Shown here: positions 29,930-37,072 of the stretch, piece by piece
How positions within the stretch are numbered: position 1 is the stretch's first letter
Layout: every line of letters starts with the position of its first letter
Sequence record: OP599913.1
Length of the DNA stretch: 64,000 nt
Strand: one strand, 5' to 3'
Notes under the pieces: model-generated
Databases searched by the model: none
The model's input: only the letters and a program-made list of their open reading frames with translations
Told to the model about the DNA's origin: nothing
Program-made: the position numbers and the translations under genes

Positions 29930-31231
29930 TTATTTAAGCGCTGTTTCCAAATCCAACAGGTTCGTTTTACTACCTGCAGTGTGATGGGCCTTCATGCGCT
30001 GCAATAAAAATGCAGTAGGAATCAAGACCACTTCGGAGCTGAGACGATGCCCTAAAGCCCCTAGACCTTCCCCACAACAGGTCTTACAATAGTAACCGTC
30101 CTTTAGGGTACAGAACTGAGGGACTCTGGCCTGCACGGGCTTATTAACGTAACGATCCAGGTTTTCAGCGGTGAGCTGTACCAGGACTTTCCCATCCTGG
30201 ATCCACGTTCCTACCCAGTACCCTTTATTGGTTGGCAGGATCGTAACAGTTTCTGTCACCGGGGTACCGCAATCCACGATATCCTCGTTAACGGCCGTGC
30301 GGCCTATTAGACGCAACGTTTCCTTAACCCTAGCCCCACCTTCACCGGTGGACATAGAACGGCTGTAAGAGCCCTCTACGGCCGTATTAATGTAGTCCGC
30401 CAAGAAGTTCGGATCCCAGCCCTCTGCCAGGGAGTTAGGGAGTAGTACCCAGCCGTCTCCTGAAGCATTGGGTTCAATACCGAAGGAAATGAACATCCGT
30501 TTACGCGAGTTGTCAATAAACTTCTTTGCAATAAAGAACTTGCGGCTAGGACCAGACATCACGATCTTCATGTCCAGCGCCACACACTGATCAATAATCG
30601 AGGTGGCAACAACCGGATCATTGAGTTCGTCTTTATGCTCTTTAAAGAGACGATCCCTGAGTTTAATGACTTCAGGACTCACCGTTAGGGCGTCTACACC
30701 ACCCGGTTTAATGAAGTGAGACCCTAACCCTTCCAGGAACTGGCAGTTATGGGAGAACTTCAAACACTGGTCTACACTGGCTTTCCCTTCAGGTACCGCT
30801 TCCCCCGGTGGGGGATTATCCACCATGAGAGTACTCAAGATCTTCAAGATAACGGGTTTAGTGAACTCCCGGTTAAGGTAGGGTTGGGTCTTCCCGAAGC
30901 ATTCCCAGAAGAGAATAACGTTGAAGAGTAAGAGTCCAAAGGTAGTCGTGACCGCTTTACCTTGCAACACGGGATGGAAGTCTCCCGGGAGTTCCAGGAT
31001 TTCATCCATGTAGAACAGGGGTTCATTCACCTCCCCATTCACGGTATGGGTAGAACCCTCTACCACGACATTGAACCGATTATCTCCCACAAAGACAGCA
31101 TAGGGGTATTTCTTGAACTGTCCAGAGGAGTCTTCGTCTTCAAACTGGATCGTGATAATCGATTGAATAGCCGCCTTTTCGTTATAGGCTCGGTTATTCA
31201 GGAAGAGTTTAAGGTAGTCGAGTTTAGTCAT
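29930..31231 (-). CDS. rpoC: Virion RNA polymerase beta-prime middle subunit (phiKZ gp80-like)
   Basis: GSYSRSMSTGEGG bridge-helix region, DCGT, RVPQFC...CKTCCG Zn site, trigger-loop-like RMKAHH. Confidence 0.85.
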   Translation of the reverse strand: MTKLDYLKLFLNNRAYNEKAAIQSIITIQFEDEDSSGQFKKYPYAVFVGDNRFNVVVEGSTHTVNGEVNEPLFYMDEILELPGDFHPVLQGKAVTTTFGLLLFNVILFWECFGKTQPYLNREFTKPVILKILSTLMVDNPPPGEAVPEGKASVDQCLKFSHNCQFLEGLGSHFIKPGGVDALTVSPEVIKLRDRLFKEHKDELNDPVVATSIIDQCVALDMKIVMSGPSRKFFIAKKFIDNSRKRMFISFGIEPNASGDGWVLLPNSLAEGWDPNFLADYINTAVEGSYSRSMSTGEGGARVKETLRLIGRTAVNEDIVDCGTPVTETVTILPTNKGYWVGTWIQDGKVLVQLTAENLDRYVNKPVQARVPQFCTLKDGYYCKTCCGEGLGALGHRLSSEVVLIPTAFLLQRMKAHHTAGSKTNLLDLETALK

Positions 31232-32127
31232 GGGAGTTCCACTCGCTGAATAAGGTCTTCAATACGGGTCAATGTCAGAGGGTCTTCAATGACCGAATAG
31301 AGGTATTGGGTCATCTTATCCTTAAGCCATTCGTTATTGATTTCAGACACCAGGAAGAACCCAATGACCTCCTTGGCATACTGAAGGGTGCTGTCTTCCG
31401 TTTGTTGGGCCAGGAGAACCTCCAGGTTACGGCTGTAGAAGCTCAGGAAGCTCTTTACACTCCCTCCCAGTTGCCCGTTCTTCTTAACGTGCTCAAAAGC
31501 CAGAGTTCCTTCAATAAGGGTTGCATTCGCACGAATACGCTGTTCAATAGGGGTAGGAACGTTCTCAATCTCCTCGGGGTTAAAGAGAGCGTCCTTAATG
31601 GCTTTAAGGGTGACTTCAGAAACATCCTCAATAAAGGTTTCGTATTCTGACAGGTCGAGGTCTTCACCCAGGTAGAGTTGCATCACCAGGAACAGTCGGT
31701 TCACAGGGGGGATGTCATACGCCTCCAAGACGTGTTTAAGACCAATCAGGTCTTCATACTCCTGCAACTCCATAAAGAACGACAACAACCGAGTTAAAGC
31801 AGGGAGGTTGTCTTCACCCAGGAAATCATGATTGAAAACGAACCCTAGCTGTTCCAGCACATCGATTATATTGGTCGTTAGGATCAAATACACCTGATGC
31901 TTCTTAGCCGGGATATCCAAGGCTTCATTAATCAACAGATCAGTCAGTTGACTGGGCATCAAGGACTCAGGTTGACTGAGCATAATTAAATTAAACGATT
32001 CGTCCAATTCTTTAGCCTGATTGGCGGGTATGGCGTTCCGGAGTTCTGACCAGAGACCCCCTACCAGGGTGTCAGCCAGGTACACGCCCTCTTCCAGGGT
32101 AACAGATTCTTCATGCTCAATAATCAT
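31228..32127 (-). CDS. Hypothetical protein coupled to vRNAP gene
   Basis: 4-nt overlap; ATG 32127 preferred. Confidence 0.6.
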   Translation of the reverse strand: MIIEHEESVTLEEGVYLADTLVGGLWSELRNAIPANQAKELDESFNLIMLSQPESLMPSQLTDLLINEALDIPAKKHQVYLILTTNIIDVLEQLGFVFNHDFLGEDNLPALTRLLSFFMELQEYEDLIGLKHVLEAYDIPPVNRLFLVMQLYLGEDLDLSEYETFIEDVSEVTLKAIKDALFNPEEIENVPTPIEQRIRANATLIEGTLAFEHVKKNGQLGGSVKSFLSFYSRNLEVLLAQQTEDSTLQYAKEVIGFFLVSEINNEWLKDKMTQYLYSVIEDPLTLTRIEDLIQRVELP

Positions 32128-32172
32128 TGGGTTAACTCTCGTAAAGTGCGTTTCCAAAGGGAATCATAGCAT

Positions 32173-33042
32173 ATGTCGACTAAACAGCAACAGCGTCGGG
32201 TTAAGAAACTCAATAAGCGCAAGCAAGTGAGTAAGCAAAAACAACGGGCTAAGAACATCCAGGACGCTTACCTCCGGCAGGACTTTGGTAAAGGCTACCA
32301 GGGGGAGGCCCTGAGTAAAGATGCCTTGTACGATAAGGTCAGGGGTGAAAACAAAGCCTTCTCGGTGCGCGACCTTATTAACAACCGTCAACGTCTGGCG
32401 GAGTTGGCTGAACAGATGAAACTGACGGGTGATGAGGACATCCCTCAGCTCTTCAGTGGGGAAGAACTCCTCAATGCCATCAACGACATGATTACCGTCA
32501 CCATTAAGCTCCACAGTGGGGTGATCGTGTACAACCGTCTGGTTGAAGAACACCGCTTCGATATCAGTGAGGACGACCGTACCTTACTGGAGAACTACGA
32601 ACGCAAAGTGGTAGAGTTTGCGGAAGATGTCTCAGTCGTCACGACCCTGCATGAAGCGGGTCAACAACCCGAGGATTACTTTGAAGTCGTCCTTAACCTG
32701 GCTGATGTCATGGCAGCCCTCAGTGAGGAGTTTGGGGAACCGGTTCTGGCCATCATTACCCAACAGGGTGATCTGATCGAAGCCTATGCCGTTGAACACA
32801 AACCTGAAGGCCTGTCTGTCTACGATTACATGTGTCAACTTCACAGTGAACGTATTACGGTTATCCAACAGCTGTACGGTGAGAGCCGGCTGAATGACGT
32901 CTTTAACGAATTGCACACCCTGGAGCAGGAACTCCCAGATTCCCCTGAAGAGATCCCGGGTGATAACCTCCCCTTCCCTGAGAAGGAAGAGGTCGGTGAA
33001 TTCATCGCTATTTCCAACGATCCTGTCATTAACCCCCAGTAA
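32173..33042 (+). CDS. Hypothetical protein, basic N-terminus, acidic C-terminus
   Basis: 289-aa ORF divergent from vRNAP operon. Confidence 0.6.
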   Translation: MSTKQQQRRVKKLNKRKQVSKQKQRAKNIQDAYLRQDFGKGYQGEALSKDALYDKVRGENKAFSVRDLINNRQRLAELAEQMKLTGDEDIPQLFSGEELLNAINDMITVTIKLHSGVIVYNRLVEEHRFDISEDDRTLLENYERKVVEFAEDVSVVTTLHEAGQQPEDYFEVVLNLADVMAALSEEFGEPVLAIITQQGDLIEAYAVEHKPEGLSVYDYMCQLHSERITVIQQLYGESRLNDVFNELHTLEQELPDSPEEIPGDNLPFPEKEEVGEFIAISNDPVINPQ

Positions 33043-33054
33043 GGGACTGTTTGT

Positions 33055-34779
33055 ATGTCTGAGAATGTAACCCCGAACGAAAACCCTGAACTGACTCCCC
33101 CTTCGGAGTTGAGCAAAGCCGTTGAACAAACGATTCCCAAAACGGAGCCTTCCAGCCACTTTGGCTTCATGGATACCCACACGCCTCAGAATACACCCAT
33201 GAAGGAGGTGGTGGAACCGCTCAACCCCATTACCAAAGAACTGGTTGAAGACGATCGAGCTAAGGGGTTCACCAGTATCTTCCTGGGGGTTGGTAAAGAA
33301 GAGAATGAGAAAGCAGCTGAACTGATTACCAACTGGAGTGCGTGGAACACGTTCAAAGAATTGAATAAGGTAGGGGAGGTTTCCCCAACAGTCTTTGCAT
33401 CGGCTAAGCAAGACTGGGATGCCTTTGTTCAAGAGAACTACCCGGATGTGAATCCCAATGAGTTGGAGAAGACCGCTAGTGATCTGTTCAAGTTCATGAA
33501 CAGTCTTCAGGAGAACCTCCAACTTCGTACCCGCATGGTGCGGGAAGAGAATATTACCAACGCCTCGCGCCGGTGTGATAAACTCACCACGACCGATATC
33601 GTGGGTAAGACCCCGTCAGTGAATAAGAAAGGGTTGAGTATTGCAGATCGCATGATTCGGTCGACCATTCGTTCGTCGGGGGGTGTATACCAGTATAACC
33701 AACTGCTGCGTAATTCGTTCCTGAGTATTACGTGGGAGCGTCCTCAGAAGCTGGAAGTCGCCGATCTCATCAACAACATTAACCGCCGTATTCGGGGGTA
33801 TGTACGACGGGTCGGTGGGAACGCCATGGCGTTGTCTTACATTGCGGGGTATATTGAGATCTGGGATTGGTTGAAGCCCCGTTTGGTCAGCAGCAGTGTC
33901 AAAGGCCTGGCGGATTTCGATGACCTCAGCAAGGTGATCCGTATTACGGACATGCCGGTGATCTGTGCAGGTCTCTTGGCGTCGATCACGGATGACGGGG
34001 TCCAAATGGACCTCCGCTGCATGAACCCCAGCTGTGACTGGTATCAGTTCGATCTCATCGATCCGACTAAGTTGGTGCAGCGCCGTCCGTCGATTGAAAC
34101 CGATGAAGAAGCCGCTTTCTTTGGTAATATCTTCAGTGGGCGTGAACAACACACCGTTGATGAAATCCTCAAGATGATCGAACAGTCCACCTACGGGATG
34201 GACAATCGGTACGTGTACAACGAGGATCAATCCATTCGTCTGAAAGTAGGACCTCCCAGTCTGTCGGATGCCTTCGCTACCTTCGACTATTTCGTAGGGC
34301 GGGTGGATAAGCAGTTGGCGGATATTAGCAACAAGGTCAACACGGAACAAGACCTGGAAGAGCAACATCTCCTTCTGCTTAACAGCTTGAGTGGAGCGGA
34401 GTACATGCACTGGGTGGAAGAGTTCGCTATTATGCCACCTCCGGGCGAAGACAGCGAACCCCAGGTCATTAAACGAGCCAAGGAAGACCCTAACGAGTTC
34501 AATAAAGGTCTTATGGACTCCCTGCTGACCGATGAGGTGATGAATAAGAACTTGGTGTTGTTCGTCTACAATAAGGCGCCTTATCTGACCCGGACCTTTA
34601 TTGGTGTCCGTAACTTCGTGTGTCCGAAGTGCGGTACGGAGTCGGATGCTCACCAAGAAGATCGTAAACTCGGGTATACCCCGATCGATGCCTTTATGAG
34701 TTTTTTTATCCATTCCCAGCTGATGTTGATGAATCTGGCGATGGAGCGTCAAAAGGTAAACAACGAAGCCCTCTCCTGA
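33055..34779 (+). CDS. Putative tail/baseplate assembly chaperone (short, unshifted form)
   Basis: 574 aa; RCMNPSC and CPKCG Zn pairs; ...MSFF at U7 site. Confidence 0.55.
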   Translation: MSENVTPNENPELTPPSELSKAVEQTIPKTEPSSHFGFMDTHTPQNTPMKEVVEPLNPITKELVEDDRAKGFTSIFLGVGKEENEKAAELITNWSAWNTFKELNKVGEVSPTVFASAKQDWDAFVQENYPDVNPNELEKTASDLFKFMNSLQENLQLRTRMVREENITNASRRCDKLTTTDIVGKTPSVNKKGLSIADRMIRSTIRSSGGVYQYNQLLRNSFLSITWERPQKLEVADLINNINRRIRGYVRRVGGNAMALSYIAGYIEIWDWLKPRLVSSSVKGLADFDDLSKVIRITDMPVICAGLLASITDDGVQMDLRCMNPSCDWYQFDLIDPTKLVQRRPSIETDEEAAFFGNIFSGREQHTVDEILKMIEQSTYGMDNRYVYNEDQSIRLKVGPPSLSDAFATFDYFVGRVDKQLADISNKVNTEQDLEEQHLLLLNSLSGAEYMHWVEEFAIMPPPGEDSEPQVIKRAKEDPNEFNKGLMDSLLTDEVMNKNLVLFVYNKAPYLTRTFIGVRNFVCPKCGTESDAHQEDRKLGYTPIDAFMSFFIHSQLMLMNLAMERQKVNNEALS

Positions 34780-35249
34780 TTGGCGGTAAAGCGATTCACA
34801 ATCCGGAGTTCTCGGCGGTTTACTTAAACCTCCAGAAGCAAGATCTCAGTGGTCTCAAGGAAGAGACTATCCTGTTGAACAACCAAGCGTTGCATGACAT
34901 CAACATGGGATATGTCTCACCCCGTAATCTCCCCCCTCACCAATCGATTAAGTTCTTTCCGTCTGAAGTCAGGTATTACCACCCCTTCTCGTATGAGAGC
35001 ATAGGAGAGTATTACGGGACTTTTCGGCTGGATGAATACCTGCCCTTAAGGGATTACTTGGAATTGCCCGCTAACTGTGCAGACACGTTGATTAAGGCCG
35101 TTCAAAAGGGACGGGAAAAACGGTTGGTAATGGAGAAAGAGCATCTGAAGGAAGAGGAAGAGAAACAGGCGAAGAATGGGGGTAAACGAACCGCCTCGGA
35201 GTCGGTTTCTATGGATGCATTACTGGATCAATTGTCTAAACTTCGTTAA
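34707..35249 (+). CDS. Putative -1 frameshift extension of the 33055 ORF
   Basis: Frame open from 34668 to 35249 with no ATG/GTG/TTG until 34875; reached by -1 slip at T TTT TTT (34701-34707). Confidence 0.65.
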   Translation, partial: YPFPADVDESGDGASKGKQRSPLLIGGKAIHNPEFSAVYLNLQKQDLSGLKEETILLNNQALHDINMGYVSPRNLPPHQSIKFFPSEVRYYHPFSYESIGEYYGTFRLDEYLPLRDYLELPANCADTLIKAVQKGREKRLVMEKEHLKEEEEKQAKNGGKRTASESVSMDALLDQLSKLR

Positions 35250-35258
35250 GAGAATAGG

Positions 35259-35290
35259 TAACCTGGGGGCTTAGAGCCCCCAGGTTATCT
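35259..35290 (+). terminator. Intrinsic terminator
   Basis: 13-bp stem TAACCTGGGGGCT/AGCCCCCAGGTTA. Confidence 0.75.
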
Positions 35291-35351
35291 TATGACATAC
35301 ATGGTGACACCTCGTCTCTATACCACTGTCCAACTGAAAAGGGCCCTCCTA

Positions 35352-35960
35352 ATGTCCAACGATTACAAAGCACCTGAGGTCGATGACCTCGGTAAGAAAG
35401 AAGAAAGTCCGAAGACCCAACCTACGCCTTCCATCCCCAATACGGTGGCTAAGGCCCAGGGTGCTAAATTCGAACCCGTACCTCTCCGTATTGGCATTGG
35501 CCAAATGGTCAATGGCAAAGGTAATGCGGTCACGGATATCATGAAAGAACGGATTGACCGTCACCTGACCTACCTGGCCGGTAAGAAAGGCTTCACCAGT
35601 GATAGTGAACGGGAGGATGAACAAACCTCCTTTATCGAGATCATTGGTTCTACGCTGACCCTTCCGTTTCCCCAGTACGTCATCGTTACTGACTACCTGT
35701 TGACGGTTATCCGGGAGAACCGGGAAATCTTTGCCAACGGTACGGCATTCCGCTTTACCTACAAACTCCGTAAGGAGTACCCGATGGAGAACGTTAAACT
35801 CTATCACACCTACATGACCTTCCTGACGTTCATCGCGGGTAACTGGGAAGCTCGTCATCGTCTTAACCGCATCATTGATCTGGGAACGGCTATCCGTGAT
35901 CTTCCTCGTAAGGGCAAAGAGAACGTCACCCAGTACTTCAATAAGCTGCAAAACGTTTAA
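35352..35960 (+). CDS. Conserved hypothetical protein, probably virion
   Basis: ATG 35352 preferred; helical protein. Confidence 0.55.
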   Translation: MSNDYKAPEVDDLGKKEESPKTQPTPSIPNTVAKAQGAKFEPVPLRIGIGQMVNGKGNAVTDIMKERIDRHLTYLAGKKGFTSDSEREDEQTSFIEIIGSTLTLPFPQYVIVTDYLLTVIRENREIFANGTAFRFTYKLRKEYPMENVKLYHTYMTFLTFIAGNWEARHRLNRIIDLGTAIRDLPRKGKENVTQYFNKLQNV

Positions 35961-35986
35961 TTTCCCTTAGACTCTTTATCCAAGGA

Positions 35987-37072
35987 ATGCTTCCAATGGA
36001 CAGTGTTGTACTTACCGAAGAAGATGGTAACGGTTATGAAATCCCGGATCTCCCTCACATCGGGATTGTGTATGATGCGCTCAACGATACCCTGGATCAA
36101 GTGGATCGGGGCGTTGCAGGCACGGAAAGCCTGACTGCCTCCCAACAGTACCTGGTAGGCGTACTCGTCGCGAACCGACCCGGTTACTCGGTGGCCGGTA
36201 ACGAAGGCTTTATGGCCAATATCGGCGCAGGCCTTAAAGCCGCGTATGAGTACGTGGTGAAGATGTTCAAGAGCCTCTGGGACTTCTTCTTTAAGCGTGA
36301 TGTCTCTCAGAAGACCTCGGATGCTAAGAAGGAGATTGATGATCTCCAGACAAAACTGGAGGTGGTTCAGACCGGGGGTAAGACGGAAGCGGAAACCCAG
36401 GAAGCCCTGCACTCCATGAAGGCCCAGGTTAAGGAACAGGCCCAATCTGGCTTTAAGATCGACGGGGTAGACGCAGAAGAATGGGTGGAGAAACAGGCGA
36501 AGACTTCTGCTACCCACGAAGAGAAGAAAGCCGCGGTTAAGACCCTGGCTCGAGAGCTTCCCAAGGTCAACACTCGGGGTAAGAAACGCCTCCAAGGTGT
36601 CATTGAGCGGATGATCAAAACCCAGCAATATTTGGTCAGTGTGATTGATATTGCTGAAAAAGAAGCCCGAGAAACCCTGAATGAAAACCTGATGCGGGTA
36701 ACGGACTCCATGAAACTCCTCCGCACCAATGTTCATCAGTCTACCGAGCAGCTGAGTCGAGTGAAAGACGTCAAAGACCTGACGGCTGTACACAACGTCA
36801 TGAACGGTGTTATTAAAGAGATCGATACCTTTAAGAATGCTGCTCAGGCCGTGCAGAGTGTTCGCGGCAAAATGGCTGACAAGATTAAGATCGTTGAACA
36901 GCAATTGGCCGAGGTGGCTAAAGGTGGAGGTGACACCAAAGCGACTCAAGCAGCGCTGGATGAACTCCGCAAGATCATGAACTTCCTGGTTAAATGTGGT
37001 AAATGCATTACCAACATCATTGAAGACAGTGTGAAGCTCCAGAAAGCCTTTAATGGTGTCTTCGGGCTGTAA
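35987..37072 (+). CDS. Head/inner-body-type protein with G-x-E processing site
   Basis: AGTES and AGNE|GF followed by amphipathic helix ending LWDFF. Confidence 0.65.
   Translation: MLPMDSVVLTEEDGNGYEIPDLPHIGIVYDALNDTLDQVDRGVAGTESLTASQQYLVGVLVANRPGYSVAGNEGFMANIGAGLKAAYEYVVKMFKSLWDFFFKRDVSQKTSDAKKEIDDLQTKLEVVQTGGKTEAETQEALHSMKAQVKEQAQSGFKIDGVDAEEWVEKQAKTSATHEEKKAAVKTLARELPKVNTRGKKRLQGVIERMIKTQQYLVSVIDIAEKEARETLNENLMRVTDSMKLLRTNVHQSTEQLSRVKDVKDLTAVHNVMNGVIKEIDTFKNAAQAVQSVRGKMADKIKIVEQQLAEVAKGGGDTKATQAALDELRKIMNFLVKCGKCITNIIEDSVKLQKAFNGVFGL

Follow-up and report, generated by a model that had tools for sequence, protein, structure and literature searches.

Here we describe a probable recoding event in the genome of an EL-like Pseudomonas phage, found in a 64,000 nucleotide (nt) stretch of sequence record OP599913.1 (the window, to which all unprefixed positions refer). 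The data suggest that gene 47 (gp47 of phage EL, gp77 of phiKZ) very probably encodes a second and longer protein, which extends into gene 48 (gp48) and is made by a programmed -1 frameshift on a slippery run of U residues. Ribosomes translating EL gene 47 would reach the heptamer U_UUU_UUU with Phe tRNAs in both the P site and the A site, and a fraction of them would slip back by one base. Those that do not slip would terminate 23 codons later to give a protein of 574 amino acids (aa), whereas those that slip would read 180 more codons in the -1 frame, across an apparent gap of 95 nt and the whole of gene 48, to give a protein of 731 aa. In the longer product the shared first 551 residues would be followed by a linker of low conservation, then by a conserved domain of about 110 aa, and last by a charged tail. 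Both the site and the open frame beyond it are present and conserved across the phiKZ-like phages.

The source of the window is a Pseudomonas phage EL-like genome; a megablast search with 33055-35300 returned ten EL-like records at 97.9-100% identity. The 574-aa open reading frame (ORF) is EL ORF047 and the 124-aa ORF downstream is EL ORF048, both of which are labelled 'hypothetical protein'. The upstream ORF (33055-34779) reads AGT TTT TTT ATC near its end, with the run of seven T residues (34701-34707) in X_XXY_YYZ phase. The -1 frame opens after the TAA at 34665-34667 and crosses the gap at 34780-34874, and its first ATG, GTG or TTG is the TTG at 34875. By count, 551 residues (through the second Phe) and 180 residues in the -1 frame make up the 731 aa. 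An earlier note on this DNA had described the ORF, the T run, the -1 frame, the gap, the end at 35249 and the 731-aa length of the predicted fusion, and all of these are correct. It had also proposed that a -1 shift at the U run fuses the 574-aa ORF to the downstream ORF, and this is supported in 33 lineages by the relation of the frames, the in-phase heptamer, the use of UUU and a linker free of both stops and starts.

These lineages were found as follows. The zero-frame protein and the -1 piece were used separately as tblastn queries and gave homologues at 24-36% identity in RisingSun/Joad, FishSpeaker, the Klebsiella Miami group, Vibrio and Aeromonas phages, OBP and other phages. The weak match in pEa_SNUABM_54 was used as a bridge; its protein matches 247 records of the phage collection by tblastn, including Phikzvirus, PhiPA3, SPN3US, Ralstonia RSL2/RSF1, Xanthomonas and Burkholderia phages, PCH45 and the Bacillus phage AgentSmith. 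The gp47/gp77 gene is present in every major phiKZ-like phage group sampled. A word-index search with the -1 piece alone gave no match except the EL protein. Twenty-two annotated lineages and 14 loci from IMG/VR provided the 33 lineages used for statistics, among them EL, OBP, RisingSun, phiKZ-like PA7, PhiPA3, SPN3US, RSL2, PCH45 and one Bacillus phage. Protein identity among them is as low as 13-36%, and synonymous sites are saturated at this divergence.

In all 22 annotated lineages the downstream ORF is offset by -1 from the frame of the upstream ORF, although its annotated start lies anywhere from 8 to 218 nt beyond the upstream stop. Two Phe codons are homologous in all 33 lineages and lie 17-46 codons 5' of the zero-frame stop. 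The heptamer at this position is TTTTTTT in 18 lineages, TTTTTTC in 11, and TTTTTTG, TTTTTTA, GTTTTTT (PhiPA3) and CTTTTTT (the IMG/VR contig L027) in one each, so that U_UUU_UUN stands in phase in 31 of 33 and N_UUU_UUU in the other two. The first Phe codon is TTT throughout (33/33), even in genes where the ratio of TTT to TTC elsewhere is 0/25, 0/18 or 1/24. The codon 5' of the Phe-Phe pair (AAT, GCT, ACT, GTT, AGT or GGT) specifies six different amino acids and ends in T in 31 of the 33. The earlier note had suggested that the slippery site and the overlap be looked for in homologues, and both are kept in the 33 lineages. PCH45 (L023:2239-2380) has a zero-frame tail of 46 codons past the slip site, as against 13-26 elsewhere, and its frame overlap is correspondingly longer.

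The -1 frame itself behaves as coding sequence before any start codon is reached. The 33 lineages together have 1,663 codons from the slip site up to the first possible start and not one stop among them, whereas the other two frames past the zero-frame stop contain 291 and 468. In the part past the zero-frame stop and before any start, differences at codon positions 1, 2 and 3 number 414, 342 and 527, which is the pattern of a coding sequence. The open frame extends 154-190 codons past the slip site in 33/33 lineages, and tblastn matches to RisingSun, FishSpeaker and the Miami group begin in the -1 frame at the first residue after the site. The -1 pieces can be aligned (alignment A3) and show the conserved domain of about 110 aa followed by the charged tail. 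What characterizes heptamer-type -1 frameshifting is found here, namely an in-phase heptamer, an open -1 frame with a conserved extension, and synonymous conservation among distant homologues.

Several points weigh against this interpretation. The first U of the heptamer is absent in two lineages, PhiPA3 (L018:3721-3727, G_TTT_TTT, preceding codon GTG) and contig L027 (L027:3153-3159, C_TTT_TTT, preceding codon CAC), and P-site re-pairing would therefore be imperfect there; the -1 ORF is nonetheless open and conserved in both. The probability figures, naively 1e-25 for TTT as the first Phe codon, 1e-18 for the T-ending codon before it and about 1e-42 (by composition) for the absence of stops, treat the lineages as independent and ignore shared ancestry, so their significance is overstated. 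No conserved downstream RNA structure was found with RNAalifold in the EL and OBP clades, and no Shine-Dalgarno-like motif was seen 5' of the slip site in the sequence contexts viewed. In EL a purine-rich stretch lies 5' of the TTG at 34875, and some independent initiation of gene 48 may occur at this codon. Finally, the fusion product is a prediction from nucleotide sequences.

Stimulators of heptamer frameshifts are common but not obligatory. For 15 EL-clade sequences RNAalifold predicted no pairs at all, and for nine OBP-clade sequences it gave only eight invariant pairs with no covariation. A search of Rfam over 34400-35400 gave nothing at the family threshold. The imperfect stem that the earlier note had placed after the heptamer did not hold up, being neither unusually stable nor conserved: pairing of 34709-34713 with 34741-34745 and of 34716-34719 with 34735-34738 is part of the minimum free energy fold in EL, but with z = +0.50 against shuffled sequences, and across 15 relatives the stem (34709-34745) can pair in 46.7% of cells compared with a shuffle mean of 47.0%. 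About 20 nt past the heptamer (34708-34727) and about 11 nt at the zero-frame stop (34765-34775) are nearly invariant within clades (alignments A4 and A6). Since these nucleotides are coding in both frames, an RNA signal is not needed to account for their conservation. The OBP clade also has a purine-rich AGAGGA, about 12 nt 5' of the zero-frame stop.

The same 731-aa protein would be made if phage or host RNA polymerase stuttered on the T run and added one extra U to some of the mRNAs. The site is a homopolymer, and PhiPA3 and L027, which lack the first U, still keep six U residues; the runs are short, however (6 in 12 lineages, 7 in 19 and 8 in 2), and efficient slippage by bacterial polymerases takes place on longer homopolymers, typically of 8-9 or more. 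The absence of a stimulatory RNA structure from our searches is also compatible with a polymerase, and both mechanisms predict one and the same protein. Against this, the X_XXY_YYZ phase is kept in 31/33 lineages and is needless for a polymerase, although part of the phase follows from the conserved Phe-Phe. The phase of the heptamer and the shortness of the runs favour ribosomal slippage over polymerase stuttering, which we consider improbable, and we infer that it is the ribosome that slips.

A second alternative is that genes 47 and 48 are two separate genes. Gene 48 would then have its own initiation at TTG 34875, and the U run, the overlap and the open frame would be remnants or chance. 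This is how every GenBank record examined annotates them, with two coding sequences (CDS), and the purine-rich stretch before TTG 34875 in EL would suit it. Among the 33 lineages, however, the first ATG, GTG or TTG ranges over alignment columns 22 to 131 and no start position is conserved. In PA7, pEa_SNUABM_54, AgentSmith and Special G the first start is internal to the conserved domain, which would be cut short by independent initiation. Separate genes would also leave without reason the stop-free stretch before any start in 33/33 lineages, a frame relation kept despite many changes in length, and a heptamer kept against codon preference. Taken together, the frame, the heptamer, the rare UUU codons, the stop-free linker and the unfixed starts leave little room for two independent genes, and we regard that explanation as very improbable. 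An error of assembly or sequencing in the homopolymer, which would make the true gene one continuous 731-aa ORF, can be discounted almost completely in favour of the frameshift: such runs are error-prone and the EL-like record vB_PQ1 is heavily fragmented, but the slip region (67 nt) has the same length in ten of ten independently sequenced EL-like GenBank records (identical in nine), which excludes such an error, and the same -1 offset occurs in 33/33 lineages, none of which has both parts in one frame.

Two of the records have unusual annotations. In HHBS8_1 (L002) the gp47 homologue is annotated as two CDS; the region is 1 nt shorter than the query, with a single break that lies upstream of an intact slip site. 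In vB_PQ1 (L059) there are 488 CDS in 184 kb and many genes are fragmented, so this looks like an error-rich assembly.

The features of the region are collected in Table 1. The PhiPA3 record carries a note that equates its gp074 with phiKZ gp077, 201phi2-1 gp136 and EL gp047, and a virion RNA-polymerase beta-subunit gene adjoins it. The PHROG 4585 profile matches EL gp47 with E = 4e-158 over residues 9-571, and 16/16 members of alignment A2 match it too. The hairpin 3' of the -1 stop looks like a terminator marking the end of the unit, as the earlier note had proposed for the sequence after 35249; a simple scan calls it terminator-like on the minus strand only.

Table 1. Features of the gene 47/gene 48 region (positions in the window)
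Feature	Position	Strand	Remarks
Zero-frame ORF, EL ORF047	33055-34779	+	phiKZ gp77/PhiPA3 gp074/201phi2-1 gp136 family, PHROG 4585; predicted 574-aa short product
Cys322 and Cys327 codons	34018-34035	+	First half of putative four-Cys zinc site
CPKC knuckle, Cys523 and Cys526	34621-34632	+	Second half of putative zinc site; 24 codons 5' of slip site
Slippery heptamer T_TTT_TTT, X_XXY_YYZ phase	34701-34707	+	Third base of Ser549 with Phe550 and Phe551 codons
Open -1 frame	34668-35249	+	Would be read after the shift over 34707-35246 (180 codons); stop 35247-35249
Apparent 95-nt intergenic gap	34780-34874	+	Coding in the -1 frame only; linker of the predicted long product
EL ORF048 as annotated	34875-35249	+	TTG start, 124 aa, PHROG 19747; domain conserved in 21 lineages
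Perfect 13-bp GC-rich palindromic hairpin	35259-35287		Directly 3' of the -1 stop, between ORF048 and ORF049

Searches by sequence family say little about what the two products do. Pfam gave no match for gp47, the -1 piece or their relatives, and PHROG gave families of unknown function only: the upstream protein fell into 4585 and 8054 and the downstream piece into 19747. In gp47 all of C322, C327, C523, P524 and C526 are invariant in alignment A1; in A2, C322 and C327 are conserved to at least 90%. The conservation of C322, C327, C523 and C526 suggests a putative zinc site. An AlphaFold2 model of gp47 had a mean predicted local distance difference test score (pLDDT) of 70.9 and a predicted template modelling score (pTM) of 0.69. 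The model of the 180-aa -1 piece was poor (pLDDT 48), with a disordered first 60 residues followed by helices.

A Foldseek search of BFVD with the gp47 model returned members of the family first (E = 3e-32 to 7e-7). The next matches were named 'Baseplate hub assembly protein, bacteriophage T4-like' (E = 1e-4, target-normalised template modelling (TM) score 0.46), 'Baseplate hub assembly chaperone' and 'Baseplate hub subunit'; for all matches with baseplate-hub names, E ranged from 1e-4 to 6e-2 and the target-normalised TM-score from 0.46 to 0.52, the query model having a pLDDT of 71. Our working guess is that gp47 may help to assemble the hub of the tail baseplate and that its predicted fold may be related to that of T4 gp26 and gp51; this is the weakest link in our interpretation. 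Three results count against the guess. The PDB gave no neighbour for gp47, either by sequence or by fold; PF12322 did not match any of 16 members at E <= 1, while it scores T4 gp26 and gp51 at 216 and 178 bits; and an hhalign comparison with alignment A1 aligned only nine columns, at the CPxC knuckle. With A2, local hhalign gave probabilities of 99% against T4 gp51 and gp26, which is an artefact since reversed templates score alike. In the records of OBP, N1M2, ZPAH34 and SXP01 the upstream neighbour is marked as a virion structural protein and the gp47/gp48 pair is not, which fits weakly with a non-structural assembly factor.

The earlier note had called the two products a long and a short chaperone and had compared them with lambda G/GT and P2 E/E'. 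The comparison holds for the layout, and arrangement is conserved where sequence is not: a -1 heptamer lies near the 3' end of the first ORF and the extension covers what appears to be the next small gene, and gp47/gp48 may likewise act in tail assembly. It does not hold for size (the short product of gp47 is 574 aa, compared with about 100-150 aa), for sequence family, or for adjacency to the tape-measure gene. G/GT-type chaperones sit between the tail tube and tape-measure genes, whereas gp47 is found beside virion RNA-polymerase genes, and gp47/gp48 have no tie through Pfam or PHROG to chaperone families. The name 'chaperone' is not established by these data; what speaks for it is the weak predicted-fold likeness to hub assembly proteins of the T4 gp26/gp51 type.

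T4 gp26 and gp51 resemble gp47 in that CPxC motifs occur in all three, and the predicted fold of EL gp47 weakly matches BFVD proteins that carry these names. The T4 proteins both belong to PF12322, which does not match gp47, and are shorter (208-249 aa). T4 gene 26 has a pair of products as well, 26 and a nested 26' (T4 record, L038:3803-4429), but the second comes from an internal start and not from a frameshift. Escherichia coli dnaX (tau/gamma) and the T7 capsid gene (10A/10B) likewise give two products with a common N-terminal part, and for gp47/gp48 the ratio of the two would similarly be set by the rate of frameshifting. Stimulators are known for both of those genes and none was found for gp47; additionally, the shifted product is the shorter one in dnaX and would be the longer one in gp47/gp48.

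Frameshifted chaperone pairs occur in most other tailed phages. It is tempting to suppose that the phiKZ-like phages have their long-missing frameshifted tail-assembly chaperone in gp47/gp48, and that this unit is an evolutionary relative of T4 gp26/gp51, but we think this rather unlikely. If it were true, the hub-assembly proteins of T4 would be tied to the frameshifted chaperone pairs, and such pairs would be ancestral to the contractile-tail jumbo phages too, with the gene having moved away from the tape-measure gene.

Full-text literature searches on phiKZ, jumbo, nucleus-forming and Chimalliviridae phages, with subscription journals outside their coverage, gave no description of a frameshift in gp47, in agreement with the earlier note, which knew of none in phiKZ-like phages. 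Papers found under 'gp77', 'gp136' and 'gp39/40' follow the numbering of other phages and are irrelevant here, and the text of a transposon-sequencing (Tn-seq) paper on PCH45 does not mention the gp47 homologue. None of the genome records examined contains a joined CDS; all annotate two separate genes. The mechanism is of a known kind; what appears new is this instance of it, the gene family and its conservation across the phiKZ-like phages.

For annotation this means that the records examined show two unrelated hypothetical genes where, most likely, a single gene is recoded to give two products. In several of them, that of phiKZ-like PA7 included, the small ORF as annotated covers only a truncated part of the domain. 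A usable rule would be to look for an in-phase U_UUU_UUN at Phe-Phe, 17-46 codons before the stop of a gp77 homologue. The persistence of a recoding signal from Pseudomonas to Bacillus phages, at a protein identity of 13-36%, indicates that both products matter, and both are presumably needed. This gives a strong reason to study gp47, a core gene of unknown function. The site may also serve for the study of efficient -1 shifting on a U run that lacks a recognisable stimulator, in a phage known to bind the ribosomes of infected cells.

Finally, the neighbours of the pair across lineages are virion RNA-polymerase beta-subunit, structural, helicase and hypothetical genes, and the gene does lie away from the tape-measure gene, as the earlier note had stated. 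In the phiKZ-type lineages the gene for the virion RNA-polymerase beta-subunit adjoins the block. The EL/OBP-type lineages have a conserved order in which a minus-strand gene of about 295 aa and a plus-strand gene of about 250 aa are followed by the recoded pair and a gene of about 180-220 aa (29930-33042 and 35292-37072 in the window). The minus-strand gene of about 295 aa is annotated as virion structural in four records of these lineages.

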